A program made the translations under genes and the position numbers. Positions 38,500-48,800 of a stretch of DNA of 64,000 nucleotides are shown here, piece after piece. This DNA is from Camelus ferus. Taxonomy: Eukaryota. Below the pieces are notes generated by a model, which made no database searches, was not told the DNA's origin, and saw nothing but the letters and a program-made list of their open reading frames with translations. Every line of letters begins with the position of its first letter. Position 1 is the stretch's first letter. The stretch spans positions 22,072,001 to 22,136,000 of the forward strand of contig NC_045716.1 in assembly GCF_009834535.1 (NCBI RefSeq), given 5' to 3'.

Positions 38500-40065
38500 N
38501 NNNNNNNGGCAGCAGGGAGGGGCAAGTGAGATGTTCAGGGCGGGATCCCTGGTTGTCCTGGCCAGCCTCCCAGGTCTTGTCCCACTCCCGTTCCCCCCAT
38601 TTGTTTCCCCATTGCTGCCCCAGGAGACCGTTGCTGACTTGGCCCCAGCTTAACTGGGCCTAGCTACCACCCACTCCTCTGCCCCCTGCACAGCCCAGTC
38701 TTTCATGCCCCACACCCACCTCCCTTGACTTTCTCCTGGCCTCCCTTTCCTGGTCTCGCTCTTCACTCTGGTGACCCCTACACCCTCTCAGCCCCTCCAG
38801 GATCACCCACCTCCACACCTCGGGTCTCATAATCCCTTTCACCCTCCCCCTGACATGACGTGGCCCCAGCTGAGCCCCTTCCCCATTGGTGCTCACCGGG
38901 TGAAACGGACGCCGCAGACTTCACAGGCGAAGGGCTTCTCACCAGTATGGGTCCTCATGTGGCGTGGCAGTTTGCCTGCCCCGTGGATGATCTTGTGGCA
39001 GACTGGACACTCCTGGGGCATCTGGGAGCGGCGTTTGCGCACTAGCTTGTCCTGGCCATCCAGGCCTGGTGCCAGGGTGTCCTGGTGCAGGGAACTCAGG
39101 TAGGCCATCAGGTCAGGATCGATGGCATCCTCATCTGAGCCCAGCTCCTCGGGGGACAGCGGGGGCCCACTGCCCTGCACCAGCCCATAGGCTGGGGGAT
39201 ATACCAGCTCCTCCTCTTCTTCCTCACCCTCATAGGCATCGTAGCTCAGGGGCCCCTCAGTGGGTGAGGCAGTCCCTGTGGGAGGGCTGTAGCTGTCCCC
39301 TGGACCGCTGCCCCCACTGCTGCCCACTCTGCCAGCTGCGTCCTCCTCCTCATAGGTCAAGGGATGGGTGGGCACTGTGGGCACTTCGGGCACTAGGTGG
39401 TTGGCCCGGGCCCCCTTGGTCTGCAGGAAAGCTTTTCGGGGCTTGCGGCTGCGGCGGGCGACAGGCCGAGGTGGCGGTGGTGGTGGTGGGAGGGGCACCT
39501 GTGGAGCACTGTCTTCACCATTGGGAACTCCCGAGGCTGAGGCTGAGGCTGAGGCTGTGGCTGTGGCGAAGGCCTCCAGGTACTGGCGAGCTCGCTCGCA
39601 GTCGTCCTCATCAGGGCTGGGAGCTTCCAGTCCGCTGCCCTGCAGGATCTCCATGCAGGCAGCGATGACACATGGGATCTCCAGCAGCCGCGCGGCCTGG
39701 AGCACGGCTGGCATGTTGGCGCTGCTGGTGGTCAGCGTGGCCGTATAGGCAAACTCAAGCAGGGCACCCAGGGCCTCTGGCCCCACAAAGTCCAGCTCAC
39801 ACACACCGGCCCCTGCTCCCCCGGTGGCTGTCCCGCTGCCCCCAGAGCCCATGACTGCCCCGCCACCACCCTCAGTGAAGAGCTTCTTGAAGTAGTGGCT
39901 ACAGGCAGCCAGCACAGCCCGGTGGGTGCGGTATTCAAGGCCCTGGGTCCGGATGGTGAGGTCACATAGGTGGCCCAGCTGGCGCTGCTCATTGAGGCTG
40001 CTCAGGAGCTCACTGCTGTGGTCTGGGAATGGAATCCCGATCAGGTCGTCCTCCGGGCTCCCCAT
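38034..40065 (-). CDS. ZBTB7B: Zinc finger and BTB domain-containing 7B (ThPOK/cKrox), CDS span, 2 coding exons
   Basis: MGSPEDDLIGIPFPDHSSELL BTB domain; C2H2 finger CPVCHKIIHGAGKLPRHMRTHTGEKPF; C-terminus ...QAEGAMESS-TAA. Confidence 0.97.
38897..40065 (-). CDS. ZBTB7B: ZBTB7B main coding exon
   Basis: ATG at 40065 after cagcagaagaag; ends CGVRFT CG|GTGAGC. Confidence 0.96.
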
Positions 40066-40129: not shown

Positions 40130-41780
40130 ACTGGCCAGGTGCCTATAGGCCGGGTGGTCTTCTAAGTACTTTACACCCATTTCATCTTCCCCAATCTTCT
40201 AAAGTAACGATTATCATCCATTTCACAGACAGGAACCTGAGGTGCAGGCAGGTGAAGTAACTTTCCAAGTTAAGTGCAGAATGGGTTCAAAGCCAGGTGG
40301 TCCGTGTTCCTAACACCTGTGCACTATTCTACCTGAGAGCAGGAGCCCCGCCTTTCTGGTCCTTTCTTAGAGACCCATCTACTTCACCTTCCCCATTTCC
40401 CATCCCTTTGGAAGAAGCACTGGACTGGGAAGAAGGATGCCTGGGTCCTGGTTCAGGCTTCATGAAGAACTGGCTGAAGGACTCTGGGTGGCTCTGGCAG
40501 CTAGCCTCAGTCATCTGCAAAGTGTGGTGCCAGTCTTTACGATGGAACCTCCTCACAGCCCAGAGAGGCTGATGAGAGAGTTCAGATTCACACTGGACCA
40601 AGGTCTGTTCAAGGCAAGGTCAGGTGCTTTAACTCACGTTATCTCCCTAAAGCATTTGTTGCACTGTAAAACACTATGCAAACATGAGAGGCAGCTTCCC
40701 AGCGCCCTCCTCCTTCTCTTCCTCCTGTCCCTCCTCCACCCACTAAAAGTTCATCTCCCCTTCTAGATACCCACTTNNNNNNNNNNNNNNNNNNNNNNNN
40801 NNNNNNNNNNNNNNNNNNNNNNNNNNNNNNNNNNNNNNNNNNNNNNNNNNNNNNNNNNNNNNNNNNNNNNNNNNNNNNNNNNNNNNNNNNNNNNNNNNNN
40901 NNNNNNNNNNNNCGTTCCCCGCCCCCTCCCCCACTGCCAATAGGCCAAGTTCCAGTCCCACCCCTCCCCCCTGGTCTACCACCACCACCTCTCCCTCCCA
41001 GTTCCCGGCCAGTCAGGAGAGTCCCCCTCTCCAGAGGTCCATCTTCCACCCTCTATGCTTTCCCTTCCAAGGCAAAGCCACAGAAGGCTCAGAGCTGCCA
41101 GCAACCCTTGGTGGAGGCTGGTGGAGGGGAGGGGAGGGGTAATAGAGTGAGTCTGGCCTGGAAGTGGGGAGATCTGCTTCAAGTCCTGGCTCTGCTGCTA
41201 TCTTGCTGAATGACCTTGGGCAAGTCATTTCTCTCTGTGCTTCCATTTCCTCACTGTACAAGGAAGGGGTGGGATTGGAAGCCCCAAGGGCTCAGCCCTT
41301 TGCCCTAACATTCGGTGGGCCTGGAGCAACTGAAGACAGAATTGGGGCCTGGAAAGAGCTGGACTCTGGAGTCATCCAGGCTTGAGTTTGAATCCTCACT
41401 ATGTGGCTGATTAGCCCTGTGACCTTAAACAAGTGATTTAATCTCTGAACCTCCTTCCTCATCTGTAACATGGGACAGTTCCACCAGACTCCTAGGGCTG
41501 TGGTGAAGGTTAAACGAGTCCAATGCAGGCACAATGCCTGACCCACAGTAGGGGCTCAGTAAATGTTCTGGCCTTGGGAGGGAGGAAGAAGGCCTCACCT
41601 GGAAGTAGATTTCACTATATAGACGGCCTCTGCCGCGAGACAGGTCTGCCTCCCTCCCTCAGATCACCCCAGGGAGTCAGGTTACTACCAGCTACATGAC
41701 CTTGGACAAGTCACTTCCTTCCCCAAGGAGGCCTGTTTCCTCATCTGTAAAATTAAAGGGTGACCTAGATGATCCTTAGG
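40130..41780. mobile_element. Several MIR fragments in the ZBTB7B intron
   Basis: 40130-40320 (minus); 41150-41270, 41355-41580 and 41690-41775 (plus): gaccttgggcaagtc, ctcatctgtaaaa. Confidence 0.65.
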
Positions 41781-43687: not shown

Positions 43688-45603
43688 CTCCTTCCAGGGT
43701 GATGGAGAGGCCTGAGGCTCTTCCCACCTTGGCTGGCCACCCTTCCCCCTTACTTCTTTCTCCTTTCTACCCCCCAACCCCCACCCCAACTCCAGCCTCA
43801 GGTTCTCTTCCTGTTTTTTTGGAACTAAGTTTGCACGAAGCCAGGGCTTTGGCCTGTGGCTGGACCATGGGGGTGGGGAAATAGGGCAGCCAGTCTAAGG
43901 TCCTCAGGGACCCGGGAATCCTAGTTCCCCAGCTTCTCCCACCCCTTCCTAGGGCCTCTGGGGCCCAGGGGCTGAAGCCATCTGGACTAACCCAGTGGGG
44001 AAGGCAGGGTGAGAGGTTGAGGTGAAGCCCTTGGAGGACTGGAAGGGCTTCAAAGGAGAGGCCCTGGGCCCAGGGATGCCCTAGGCATCTATGGAGCCCT
44101 CCCTGACTACCCCAGCCCCTCCAAGCTAGTGCATGCCTTCCCCATNNNNNNNNNNNNNNNNNNNNNNNNNNNNNNNNNNNNNNNNNNNNNNNNNNNNNNN
44201 NNNNNNNNNNNNNNNNNNNNNNNNNNNNNNNNNNNNNNNNNNNNNNNNNNNNNNNNNNNNNNNNNNNNNNNNNNNNNNNNNNNNNNNNNNNNNNNNNNNN
44301 NCTCAAAATCCCCAATTCCTGGTGCTTCAACTCCTGACAGGAGGGAGACCTCAGTATTCCCTACATTTTCTTTCCATGACACCTGCCCTAGTCCGCAGCC
44401 TCTCAGGCCGCATCAGGGGAAATCTGAGGGACATAAAAGATGGCGGAGGGAGGAATAGGGGCAACTCCCTCTTACCCAGCCTTCTCCTCTTTACCTTTGG
44501 AGACCCCTGCCCTCAGCCTCTCTCTATTCTTGGCCCCTTTTCTTGGCCTCCTCTTCCTGTCCCCTCACTGCCTTCTCCAACCCTGTCTCTGCTCTCCGCA
44601 ACTCATCCTTTGCTTTCCTTCCGTCAGCCCTTGCCAGGCTCCTGCGTCTTCTCTACCACATCCATGTCCCTTGGCCTCCTAGGAACCATCCCTGCCTCTC
44701 CTTGATTTTCCCTTCTGGTTCTCTTGCTCAAGCCTCTCCCACTTCCTCCATTTCACCCTGCTCCGAGCATCCCGTCTCTCTTCCCCAGGCAGGCACGGTG
44801 TAGAGAGGGGCAGATAAATCAAGTCGAGAAGCCAGGCCTGTCCTTCAAGGCCTGGTCTTGCCATGAGATGTCCGCATTTCGGGCACCCACATCCCCCTTC
44901 TGGATGAAGAACAGGACCCAGATTTGGGGGATGGCTGGGGAAGATGGGTGAAGGGGGTGCTGTGAGAGCGGATGTGGGGTGGGGTGGTGGGGACAACCTA
45001 GGCCTCTCTGCCCGTCAGAGTTTCCAGCCCTGGAGCTGCTGGACTTTCCCCAGAGGCTGCCCACCCTAGGCCAGGCAACTGTGCACATGGACAGACCCTG
45101 GCCATCACAGTTCCCAACGGGGGTCTGCCTAGGCAGTGCCAGCTCCCCTTAGGGCCTGAGGAGACCGCACAAGGTGCCAGGGTCTGCCCTGTGCCCACCC
45201 CCTCCCCCCAGTCTAGTGTCTCTGGCTGGGNNNNNNNNNNNNNNNNNNNNNNNNNNNNNNNNNNNNNNNNNNNNNNNNNNNNNNNNNNNNNNNNNNNNNN
45301 NNNNNNNNNNNNNNNNNNNNNNNNNNNNNNNNNNNNNNNNNNNNNNNNNNNNNNNNNNNNNNCCCAGCGATCCCTCGGCTCCTGTAGGCCCCTTCTGCTC
45401 TCCTGTCCTGCGGGGTCCCTGAGACCCTGAAGCTTCCCCATAATCCAGACCCTCAGACCCTCAGCTCCCTAAACTGCCCCTTGTGAAGTTGGGACACCCT
45501 CTTCCTAGCCTGTTTTTCAGTCCCTCTCTGACCCTTGGCCAATTCTAGGCCTCCAAACCTCCCCTGGGGCCTGATCTCCCAAGCCAGAGTGGGGCCTACT
45601 CAC

Positions 45604-45800: not shown

Positions 45801-48800
45801 CCCCCCAGATGGAGGGAGGGGTTACCAGAGGGCTGGCAGCGTGGGAGAGGGCCTAGAGTCTCTGCCTGCGGTGCCCGAAGCCCCAGCTGTACCCACCCCT
45901 GCCTGTCCTTACTGAGTCCTAAAAGAGGAAAAAGGTGAGCGGTAGGAAAGGTAGGAGCTGGGACAGTCCAGGAGGACAGAGGTGAGGAGGAGCAATGGGA
46001 GAGGCTGCTGGAGGTGGGACCAGGAGAAGGAAGAAGGGAGGGGAGGGGACAGGAGGCGGCAGTGGCCAGAGGAGGGAGGAGGGGAACCCTGGACAGTCAG
46101 CGCCAGGGGTGACAGGTGCCCAGGTCCCAGCCCCTCAGGGCATGTGGTATAACAGGGGACCACGAAGAGGCCCTCCAGACCCCAGCAGGCCCCTTGGCAC
46201 CCCTGGGAGCTGGCCGAATTCTCCCCACCCTGTACTGGGCTGGGGCCCTCAGGGGCTGGGCAAGGCAGCACCCCGCCCTCCCCATGCCTCACCCCAAACC
46301 CACTCACATACCACAGTTCCTTGCCCGGGCGCCAGCCCCTGCCAACCAGGCCAGGGGGCAGCGCTTGTGCCAGCCCCCAATGGCCAGGGGGATCAGGGGG
46401 ACAGAGCTGGCCTGAGGTNNNNNNNNNNNNNNNNNNNNNNNNNNNNNNNNNNNNNNNNNNNNNNNNNNNNNNNNNNNNNNNNNNNNNNNNNNNNNNNNNN
46501 NNNNNNNNNNNNNNNNNNNNNNNNNNNNNNNNNNNNNNNNNNNNNNNNNNNNNNNNNNNNNNNNNNCAGGAGGGCTCAGAGCCCAGAGATGGGTGGGCCA
46601 CAAAGTTCCACTTAAACAACTCCTGGGGTCTCTCATTCCTGGAATGAGGGGTGCCCTAGGTCCCCCAGACACTAGGCCATCCCAAGTCCTTCTGGGCTGG
46701 GAGGGGGGACCACAGAATGCCCCCTAAAATATCCCCTCCCCTTTCCCCCCAACAGCNNNNNNNNNNNNNNNNNNNNNNNNNNNNNNNNNNNNNNNNNNNN
46801 NNNNNNNNNNNNNNNNNNNNNNNNNNNNNNNNNNNNNNNNNNNNNNNNNNNNNNNNNNNNNNNNNNNNNNNNNNNNNNNNNNNNNNNNNNNNNNNNNNNN
46901 NNNNNGAGGGTCACCCCTGTGCCTTGGTGCCAGCTAGGCGGGCCCAGGCCCCCAGGTCCTACAGATAACACCCAAGACCCTGTTCTTAAGCCATCTCCTC
47001 AAGAAGCAGCGCATGGGTCAGGGCCTACACGAAAAGAGCCTCGGGGGCTATGGACAGCTCGATGAGCAGTTATTGAAGGCACCATTCCCAAAGGTGGGGG
47101 CCAGTGTCCCTCCCTGCCACCAGGTGNNNNNNNNNNNNNNNNNNNNNNNNNNNNNNNNNNNNNNNNNNNNNNNNNNNNNNNNNNNNNNNNNNNNNNNNNN
47201 NNNNNNNNNNNNNNNNNNNNNNNNNNNNNNNNNNNNNNNNNNNNNNNNNNNNNNNNNNNNNNNNNNNNNNNNNNNNNNNNNNNNNNNNNNNNNNNNNNNN
47301 NNNNNNNNNNNNNNNNNNNNNNNNNNNNNNNNNNNNNNNNNNNNNNNNNNNNNNNNNNNNNNNNNNNNNNCCTAAGGTGAGAATGGGTAGCAGGTCTCAG
47401 CTGGGGAGATGGATGTCAGTCATGGGTACGTGGTGTCATGTGGGAACAAGATGGTGAGGACAAGGTGGTGGGATGCAGAGGGTACCCATGTTCCAATTCA
47501 TCCTCATCCACTTTTACATCCAGAAACATTTCTAGACTTAACCAAACTGAGAGCTCAAGGAGGACTACAACTCCCAGTGTGCACCACAATTGCTTTGCAT
47601 GTACCTTGGGAGTTGTAGTTCCCTTGAGAAGCCCTGTACTCTCCTCCTCCCCAGAGCCTTGATGATGGGGTGGGGAGGGCAGAGCAGACTCGGTCATGAA
47701 TCTCCAAGCTGAGATTGTTTAGAAGAGGTGAAAGGCAGGAGGTCTATGGTGGGGGGAGAGGACCCCTGCTCCCAGGCAAAGGGGGAGGAAAGGAGGAAGG
47801 AAGGAGGAGAGGATGTCTGTTGAAAGGGGCATATGGGTGGGGAGGAGTTGGGGGGGTGGGTGGAAACAGGAAGGAAACTGAAGCCAGAGACACGAGGTCG
47901 AAAGCAAGGGCCTGGTGGAGCCCCATTCCGAGGTCTGGCAGGGACTGGGAAGGCATTTCCCCCCGCCATTCTGGTGGCCTGGGGAGGCATAAGAGGAATG
48001 AGTGATGTCAAGAAATACTAAATTGGTGTGTTTGTGGGGGTCACTGCCTCCGTTTACCTGCCACCAGCCCTGTTTTGTCTGGGGCACCCTCAACCCTTGG
48101 ATCTGGCACAGGTATTTGCTGGCTGGCAAGCTCTGAAGGCTGACTTGGTCTTGGGATGCTAGCAGACAGAGGAAGGGATTGGGGGAGGTCAGGGCCAGGC
48201 CTGATGAGCAGTGTGGTGGAGGGAGATATGTATGGGGTTAGGCACTGGTATGAGGTCAAGGAATTGTGCTGGCAAATGAGGATGCCATCCTCTAGGACTG
48301 AGGCCATAGCAACTGGGAGCTCTCAGTGAAGAGAGAGCTAAGATGCCAAGGAAGGCCACTAGCCTCCCACCCACCCCAGGCTGTGGGACCGAATGAAGAG
48401 GGCAGCCCTTTCTGGTCTCCCTGTGGAATTTGCTAAAGGTAGCTTTCTCCTTGTGCCAGGCAGACTGTGAACATTAAAGGTGGCAACTCAGGGGGCCAGA
48501 TGGCAGCTGAGTGCCTTTCCTTAGTGGGGGTGGAGGTTAGAAGTGGGCAGAGGTTCTGCTTCCAGGCCACTTTCCCTGGGCTCCCCAAGGCTCTGGGACA
48601 GATGCTTACAGGCCCTAGCCAAGACTCTTGCCAAGAGCTGGGTCTGGCTGGGTGGCTGGGTGGGGGTCATTCTTGCCTTTCCAAAGCCCTTGATGGTGGA
48701 TGACAGTAGCTCTAACCCCTTCCCCTCAGTCCCCCAGGCCCGCTTTGGCGCCTGGCCGCCTGTGTGTTGGCAGGACTGGGGGGTGGGGGGGTGGGGGCGG

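Follow-up and report, generated by a model that had tools for sequence, protein, structure and literature searches.

ZBTB7B encodes ThPOK, which decides between the CD4 and CD8 fates of T cells. In intron 1 of this gene, within a 64,000-nt stretch of Camelus ferus DNA (contig NC_045716.1, positions 22,072,001 to 22,136,000; hereafter the window, whose own coordinates are used throughout), a 75-bp imperfect palindrome lies beside the known ThPOK enhancer GTE. Both of its arms match the M4 motif, a candidate site for THAP11 (Ronin), one arm also resembles an SBS2 site of ZNF143, and the pair is retained from marsupial to camelid. Judged from motif matches and alignments, we consider the palindrome to be probably a DNA-level regulatory element, namely a conserved inverted pair of M4/SBS2 candidate protein-binding sites at the GTE. 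The perfect 13-bp inverted repeat that first draws attention would then be a by-product, because both arms match one consensus in opposite orientation. Since their complementarity follows from this shared consensus, a hairpin need not be invoked to explain it.

A single inverted repeat composed of two M4-type arms

The palindrome had been described in an earlier reading of these letters (the original prediction), and its arms, its CTCAAGG/CCTTGAG extension, the ACCACA of its spacer and its coordinates were all borne out when we read the sequence. The 75-base palindrome is confirmed by self-BLAST of the window, in which 47554-47628 aligns to its own reverse complement. The arms are perfectly complementary over their inner 13 nt only, where 47564-47576 reads ACTACAACTCCCA and 47607-47619 reads its exact reverse complement. 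CTCAAGG (47554-60) and CCTTGAG (47622-28) flank the arms on the outside, and ACCACA (47583-47588) lies within the spacer between them. This is the sole perfect inverted repeat of at least 13 nt with a spacer of at most 80 nt in the 64-kb window, and the window's best. Full-text literature searches for the 13-mer returned mainly unrelated primer sequences.

The M4 or Ronin motif is said to go back to Xie 2005 and Dejosez 2010. In lymphoid cells M4 is bipartite, with RRACTAYR assigned to THAP11/HCF-1 and TCCCRRNR to Ikaros/p50 (PMC5006282). The pattern ACTACANNTCCCA (TBS) is bound by THAP11 and the SBS1 and SBS2 sites are bound by ZNF143, the two kinds of binding being mutually exclusive (PMC3627581). 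We observed ACTACANNTCCCA twice in the window, against 0.04 occurrences expected, and these two occurrences are the two arms; the M4 definition ACTAYRNNNCCCR is likewise matched exactly in both. For the extended motif we put together a 21-nt composite, RRACTAYRNNNCCCRRNRNRC, from the published definitions RRACTAYR, TCCCRRNR and CCCRRNRNRC (PMC5006282). It has two matches in the window, at 47562-82 (+) and 47601-21 (-), where 0.00 were expected. In six further placentals (whale, donkey, bat, squirrel, vole and rabbit) it likewise fits the two arms, and in hedgehog a single one. The two arms stand 43 bp apart, start to start, or about four helical turns. Paired sites of the Notch/RBPJ type were considered as a separate candidate and rejected, as the arms read CTCCCA and not TTCCCA, and their orientation and 30-nt spacing are unfit for a sequence-paired site.

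To follow the element through mammals, we compared the ZBTB7B locus (the gene with 10 kb of flank) of sperm whale, donkey, bat, grey squirrel, prairie vole, rabbit, hedgehog and Tasmanian devil; the loci were found through ZBTB7B proteins of other mammals, and primates were left out. On the side of the window, all comparisons used the unmasked stretch 47371-48400, with N runs untouched. Counts for eight placentals refer to the camelid plus the seven other placentals, and counts for nine species add the Tasmanian devil. The features of the element are as follows.

47554..47628, no strand: imperfect palindrome of 75 bp, from self-alignment to its own reverse complement (75% over 80 columns)
47562..47582, plus strand: M4 arm A (GGACTACAACTCCCAGTGTGC), candidate extended M4 / THAP11-Ronin site, antisense to ZBTB7B; exact match to RRACTAYRNNNCCCRRNRNRC, 0.00 expected; 19 of 21 columns invariant in eight placentals
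47601..47621, minus strand: M4 arm B (GAACTACAACTCCCAAGGTAC on the gene-sense strand), candidate extended M4 / THAP11 site lacking a good 3' half for ZNF143; exact extended-M4 match; 15 of 21 columns invariant
47564..47588, plus strand: ZNF143 SBS2-like 25-mer (ACTACAA + CTCCCAGTGTGCACCACA) overlapping arm A, from comparison with the SBS1/SBS2 probes of PMC3627581
47583..47600, no strand: middle of the spacer; 3 of 18 columns invariant in eight placentals; includes the central CAATTG and, on the gene-sense strand, an octamer-like ATGCAAAG
47583..47588, minus strand: Runx-like TGTGGT (ACCACA on the plus strand), present as TGTGGT in 5 of 9 species

The conserved footprint coincides with the protein motifs

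The 1-kb region around the palindrome aligned at 71-90% identity in every placental, and the palindrome region aligned to the Tasmanian devil at 67% identity over 450 columns. Each locus contains exactly two ACTACANNTCCCA matches, both at the orthologous place. The pair of arms is present in all nine species, separated by 30 nt in eight of them and by 29 nt in bat (43 and 42 nt, respectively, from start to start). Among the eight placentals, 30 of the 32 arm columns are invariant, compared with 11% of the columns in the flanks (binomial P about 6e-27). This invariance is unevenly distributed: it is greatest in arm A (19/21), lower in arm B (15/21), and low in the outer CTCAAGG/CCTTGAG extension, which is poorly kept (5/15 columns). 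The conserved footprint thus coincides with the two 21-nt protein motifs. In each of these respects the arms are like known M4/Ronin sites (PMC5006282), in that they fit both the core and the extended bipartite definitions and are hyperconserved across species, including retention of both arms in the devil. The octamer-like ATGCAAAG and the central CAATTG were tried as additional sites and rejected, neither being kept in bat, squirrel, vole or hedgehog.

Arm A has a second likeness, to the SBS2 site of ZNF143 (Staf), which consists of ACTACAN followed by TTCCCANNATGCAYYGCG (PMC3627581): ACTACAA, CTCCCAG and TGCACC all occur in and after arm A, the last at the exact SBS spacing. Directly after ACTACAN, the camelid sequence CTCCCAGTGTGCACCACA agrees with SBS1 TTCCCANNATGCAYYGCG at about 12 of 16 specified positions, and differs from SBS2 in having GTGCA for ATGCA and, at its 3' end, ACA instead of GCG. 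The hedgehog arm A, CTCCCAGAATGCACCGCG, agrees with SBS1 at all but the first position, and the 3' half of the hedgehog ortholog is identical to a probe used in electrophoretic mobility shift assays (ATGCACCGCG; PMC3627581). TGCAC is invariant and the next C is kept in 7 of 8 placentals. Arm B, in contrast, fails as a ZNF143 site in its 3' half and contains no complementary counterpart of TGCACC. This asymmetric conservation, with TGCACC beside arm A only, is what a protein motif predicts and not what a hairpin predicts. Of the four options offered by the original prediction, a head-to-head double binding element is thus the one that sequence comparison appears to support, as both arms are full candidate M4/THAP11 sites and the footprint conserved from marsupial to camelid is that of the protein motif. 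A search of the literature for ZNF143 together with ThPOK found no paper linking the two at the palindrome site.

As an observation in its own right, the hedgehog ortholog of arm A (L010:2695-2723, reverse strand) reads ACTACAACTCCCAGAATGCACCGCG, a textbook SBS2 that retains its two CpGs; in most other species TG or CA stands at those positions.

The palindrome adjoins the GTE enhancer

The assignment of the palindrome to ZBTB7B intron 1 was right. The gene and enhancer features that establish its setting are as follows.

38896..40065, minus strand: first coding exon (exon 2) of ZBTB7B (ThPOK); protein identity of 90-95% to mammalian ZBTB7B, which fixes strand and distance
47630..47796, minus strand: ortholog of the mouse ThPOK GTE amplicon used in quantitative PCR (qPCR), by primer mapping; adjoins the palindrome
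47751..48010, minus strand: highly conserved candidate GTE core block; 162 of 260 columns (62%) invariant in eight placentals; aligns to Tasmanian devil

About 7.5 kb separate the palindrome from the ZBTB7B ATG downstream of it, and in transcripts that start at the distal promoter it is part of intron 1. To place it among the known ThPOK elements, we mapped onto the loci the mouse qPCR primers that PMC12302258 gives for site A, for the proximal enhancer and for the GTE; GTE orthology is defined here by the primers of the GTE amplicon. With 2 errors, the reverse primer of this amplicon aligns to 47777-47796 in the window, and in the other species it falls at the equivalent position. Its forward primer borders directly on the palindrome in four species (squirrel, donkey, rabbit and vole); the equivalent place in the window is roughly 47630-47650. 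By this mapping the block at 47751-48010, which contains clustered ETS-like GGAA motifs (GGAAACAGGAAGGAAACTGAAG on the plus strand) and a CTTTG, would be the core of the ThPOK GTE enhancer. The original prediction held that no annotated feature explains the palindrome; its position next to the published GTE amplicon amends that statement.

The GTE is located between the distal and proximal regulatory elements and binds TCF1, and the proximal regulatory element, or enhancer, is 1.8 kb below the proximal promoter P2 (PMC5360760). Depending on the lineage, the GTE is reported to contact the silencer or the distal promoter (PMC8783009). In both rodents the proximal-enhancer forward primer maps about 3.4 kb gene-downstream of the palindrome; the reverse primer matched weakly, in vole. 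Combined with the published 1.8 kb, this gives a distance of roughly 1-2 kb from the palindrome, in the gene-downstream direction, to the proximal promoter, which fits the distance of ~1.8 kb upstream of P2 given in the original prediction. The stretch adjacent to the palindrome at 47127-47370 is masked. Like the ThPOK GTE as described in the literature (He et al. 2008 per PMC5360760; PMC8783009), the palindrome is found between the distal and proximal regulatory elements, beside the GTE amplicon. The best-supported placement is that it belongs to, or flanks, the known GTE enhancer on the proximal-promoter side, between the distal and proximal ZBTB7B promoters. Those sources characterize the GTE by TCF1 binding and looping, and no mention of paired M4/SBS2 motifs was found in them.

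Several further observations concern the locus itself. FLAD1 shares the strand of ZBTB7B and occupies 61.5-63.9 kb. The distances at which the proximal-enhancer primers lie from the palindrome in vole and squirrel, carried over to the window, point to roughly 44.2 kb, where a block at 44146-44301 is masked. The forward primer for mouse site A has its match at 40736-40755, some 0.7 kb upstream of the ATG. Finally, a 22-kb JGI metagenome contig (Ga0531673_0015903; L011) contains a mouse-like Zbtb7b coding sequence without intron, with flanks unrelated to the Zbtb7b locus. This is presumably a cDNA, a transgene or a processed copy from host or laboratory DNA, and the contig is of no use for mapping the palindrome region.

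Alternative explanations

The original prediction also placed a Runx site between the arms. On that account the functional core of the element would be TGTGGT on the gene-sense strand, framed by the arms and tied to Runx control of ThPOK. Runx factors do repress ThPOK via its silencer (PMC5360760), the hexamer is TGTGGT in camelid, whale, donkey, vole and rabbit, and the hedgehog CGCGGT is still within YGYGGT. However, TGTGGT occurs in the window at chance frequency (41 observed, 34 expected), which makes a single instance uninformative, and bat (TATAGT), squirrel (TATGGT) and devil have lost it, such that no YGYGGT core is conserved across the species. It also overlaps the CpG-bearing YYGCG 3' end of the ZNF143 site. 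The known functional Runx sites of the locus are, we take it, those in the silencer upstream of P1, and not at the palindrome. The simplest reading is that TGTGGT would be a CpG-decayed SBS end, of which hedgehog kept CGCGGT; independent Runx function is unlikely, and a Runx core framed by the arms seems to us very improbable.

A different proposal is that base pairing itself is under selection, whether as a hairpin in an intron-1 transcript or enhancer RNA (pre-miRNA-like or a structured RNA) or as a cruciform in the DNA. Folded as RNA, the palindrome reaches -45.1 kcal/mol on the plus strand (z -6.7) and -41.6 kcal/mol on the minus strand (z -4.0), either value being reached by no shuffle, and the additional spacer pairs expected by the original prediction, G-U included, are seen in the fold. 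A strong hairpin forms on both strands in 9 of 9 species (minimum free energy -28 to -45 kcal/mol, z -3.3 to -7.5). The RNAalifold structure has 97% of its cells paired and includes three double changes that keep pairing, which 1 of 500 shuffles reached. In sperm whale, a position-7 change in one arm only gives a G-U at the pair that is G-C in devil and A-U otherwise, as an intermediate would. The three double changes all fall in a single lineage, the devil, and amount to few independent events; the outer stem has none. That outer stem, which a Drosha substrate needs, is 75% paired, no better than shuffles. Within the core, 12 of 13 pairs never vary among the nine species and are therefore silent on pairing, and directly beside it stands an A·C mismatch in 8 of 9 species and a U·C in hedgehog. 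The conserved stem comprises the 13-bp core and about 4 bp more, as opposed to the ~33-35 bp (lower stem included) of a pre-miRNA. Neither strand folds consistently better, and the conserved columns track the protein motif, including the part of it that does not pair.

Database searches also bear on the hairpin. Neither the window nor any of five orthologous loci yielded an above-threshold match to an Rfam family. The best match is to lizard mir-5408 (RF04264, Anolis) at window 47553-47629, a weak likeness of 28 bits where the gathering score is 90. The mir-5408 hairpin arms, GGACUACAACUCCCA and UGGGAGUUGAAGUCC, carry the same M4-type motif in an inverted pair, and the likeness is confined to these motif-bearing arms; the palindrome is not a member of the family. 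A literature search for mir-5408 found nothing. As the pre-miRNA option of the original prediction has no fitting Rfam entry and no covariation in the outer stem, and as it would be surprising for a therian-conserved miRNA to have escaped notice in mouse or human, we regard selection on base pairing as unlikely. Separately, the Anolis entry suggests that inverted M4-type motif pairs, possibly repeat-derived, are annotated there as miRNA hairpins.

Two further explanations concern where the palindrome came from. It may have been exapted from a mobile element, either a long terminal repeat (LTR) fragment of MLT1J (MaLR) or an ancient palindromic miniature inverted-repeat transposable element (MITE), an idea about its origin and not about its present function. 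Strong enrichment in MLT1J has been reported for ZNF143 sites that lie away from promoters, and these are of the SBS2 type only (PMC3627581); 181 MLT1J copies with NF-Y, USF and ZNF143 sites have been reported (PMC3431495), and the majority of SBS2 sites beyond promoters belong to this family; and, to judge by lizard mir-5408, inverted repeats of the M4-like type may exist in multiple copies in another amniote. The palindrome resembles the MLT1J-borne sites in being an SBS2-type site outside a core promoter. It differs from them in being palindromic and in lacking NF-Y/USF partners, with no conserved CCAAT or CACGTG motifs nearby. The multiple copies and target-site duplication typical of a MITE, the form proposed in the original prediction, were likewise absent within the scope of our search: there is no second copy in the 64-kb window or in about 190 kb of orthologous loci, and no target-site duplication at the palindrome ends. 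Orthology in a marsupial would make any insertion older than the therian split. We find a mobile-element origin quite unlikely. The other explanation is a functionless palindrome, left by chance or by a neutral local inverted duplication (template switch). Template switching is indeed a source of short inverted duplications, and the spacer and outer arms evolve near the background rate. Marsupials and placentals, however, separated roughly 160 million years ago, and the arms have remained invariant over that time, next to flanks with only 11% invariant columns among placentals alone. Because the arms are conserved relative to their flanks and both are found in all orthologs, a young MITE, neutral DNA and chance are excluded. 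The conservation data appear in effect to refute the neutral explanation, and we give it next to no credence.

On the question of copy number, scans of metagenomes with a loose palindrome pattern are uninformative. Their matches (L001, L002, L003) were only AT-rich bacterial hairpins, ACTACAAATCCCA...TGGGATTTGTAGT, followed by T runs, which are probably intrinsic terminators unrelated to the palindrome.

Discussion

Our comparison points to a conserved, inverted pair of candidate M4/SBS2 sites at the edge of the GTE, and several observations weigh against that interpretation. Typical M4 sites are single and, as with SBS2, lie within about 100 bp of housekeeping start sites in CpG islands. The palindrome, unlike these, is an inverted pair whose spacing is fixed, and it stands in an intronic enhancer region, CpG-poor in the camelid, of a gene that specifies lineage; the closest known promoter is 1-2 kb away. 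In most species, arm A no longer has the GCG at the 3' end of the ZNF143 site. Conservation of the spacing, tested alone, is not statistically significant. Binding of THAP11, ZNF143 and Ikaros at the palindrome is something we infer from the motifs. A further difficulty comes from the Tasmanian devil (L012:2774-2829), where both arms have G for A at motif position 7 (ACTACAGCTCCCA / TGGGAGCTGTAGT), with the complementary T to C, and the arms are still perfectly complementary; two more double changes that keep pairing occur in the devil, close to the 13-bp core on its outside. Two protein sites evolving independently would neither predict nor explain such matched changes.

If the arms are indeed protein-binding sites, a mechanism can be outlined from what is known of the factors. 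The ACTAYR halves may recruit THAP11 (Ronin) and HCF-1, and the CCCR halves could be read by Ikaros-family factors in lymphocytes, while arm A might alternatively be read by ZNF143 in competition with THAP11. Ronin dimerises and bridges motif-bearing DNA, and Zfp143 does not (PMC10329844). With such dimerisation and bridging, the two sites, separated by about four helical turns, could be occupied by one dimer or by a pair of bridging complexes. The pair could thereby give the GTE a lineage-independent, promoter-like platform, or a tether for contacts with the distal promoter or the silencer.

A bolder proposal takes one of two forms. Either a Ronin/THAP11 dimer clamp, with ZNF143 competing and Ikaros on the CCCR halves, would be an architectural tether that chooses the GTE contact, distal promoter versus silencer; or pairing itself would be selected, as hairpin RNA or cruciform, as the complementary marsupial changes suggest. 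We allow this proposal a small but real chance.

The position of the palindrome is an unusual one for a motif otherwise typical of housekeeping core promoters. At the edge of the GTE, a motif pair for THAP11/Ronin, ZNF143 and Ikaros that is 160 million years old offers a small, mutable candidate for the GTE tether, and the paired M4/SBS2 sites would be a new, well-defined component of a known type of element: small, ancient and directly testable. Should the pair prove not to be bound or required, an unusually well-conserved orphan element would remain. If the pair does turn out to be bound and needed, it would connect a lineage-specific enhancer with ubiquitous promoter machinery.

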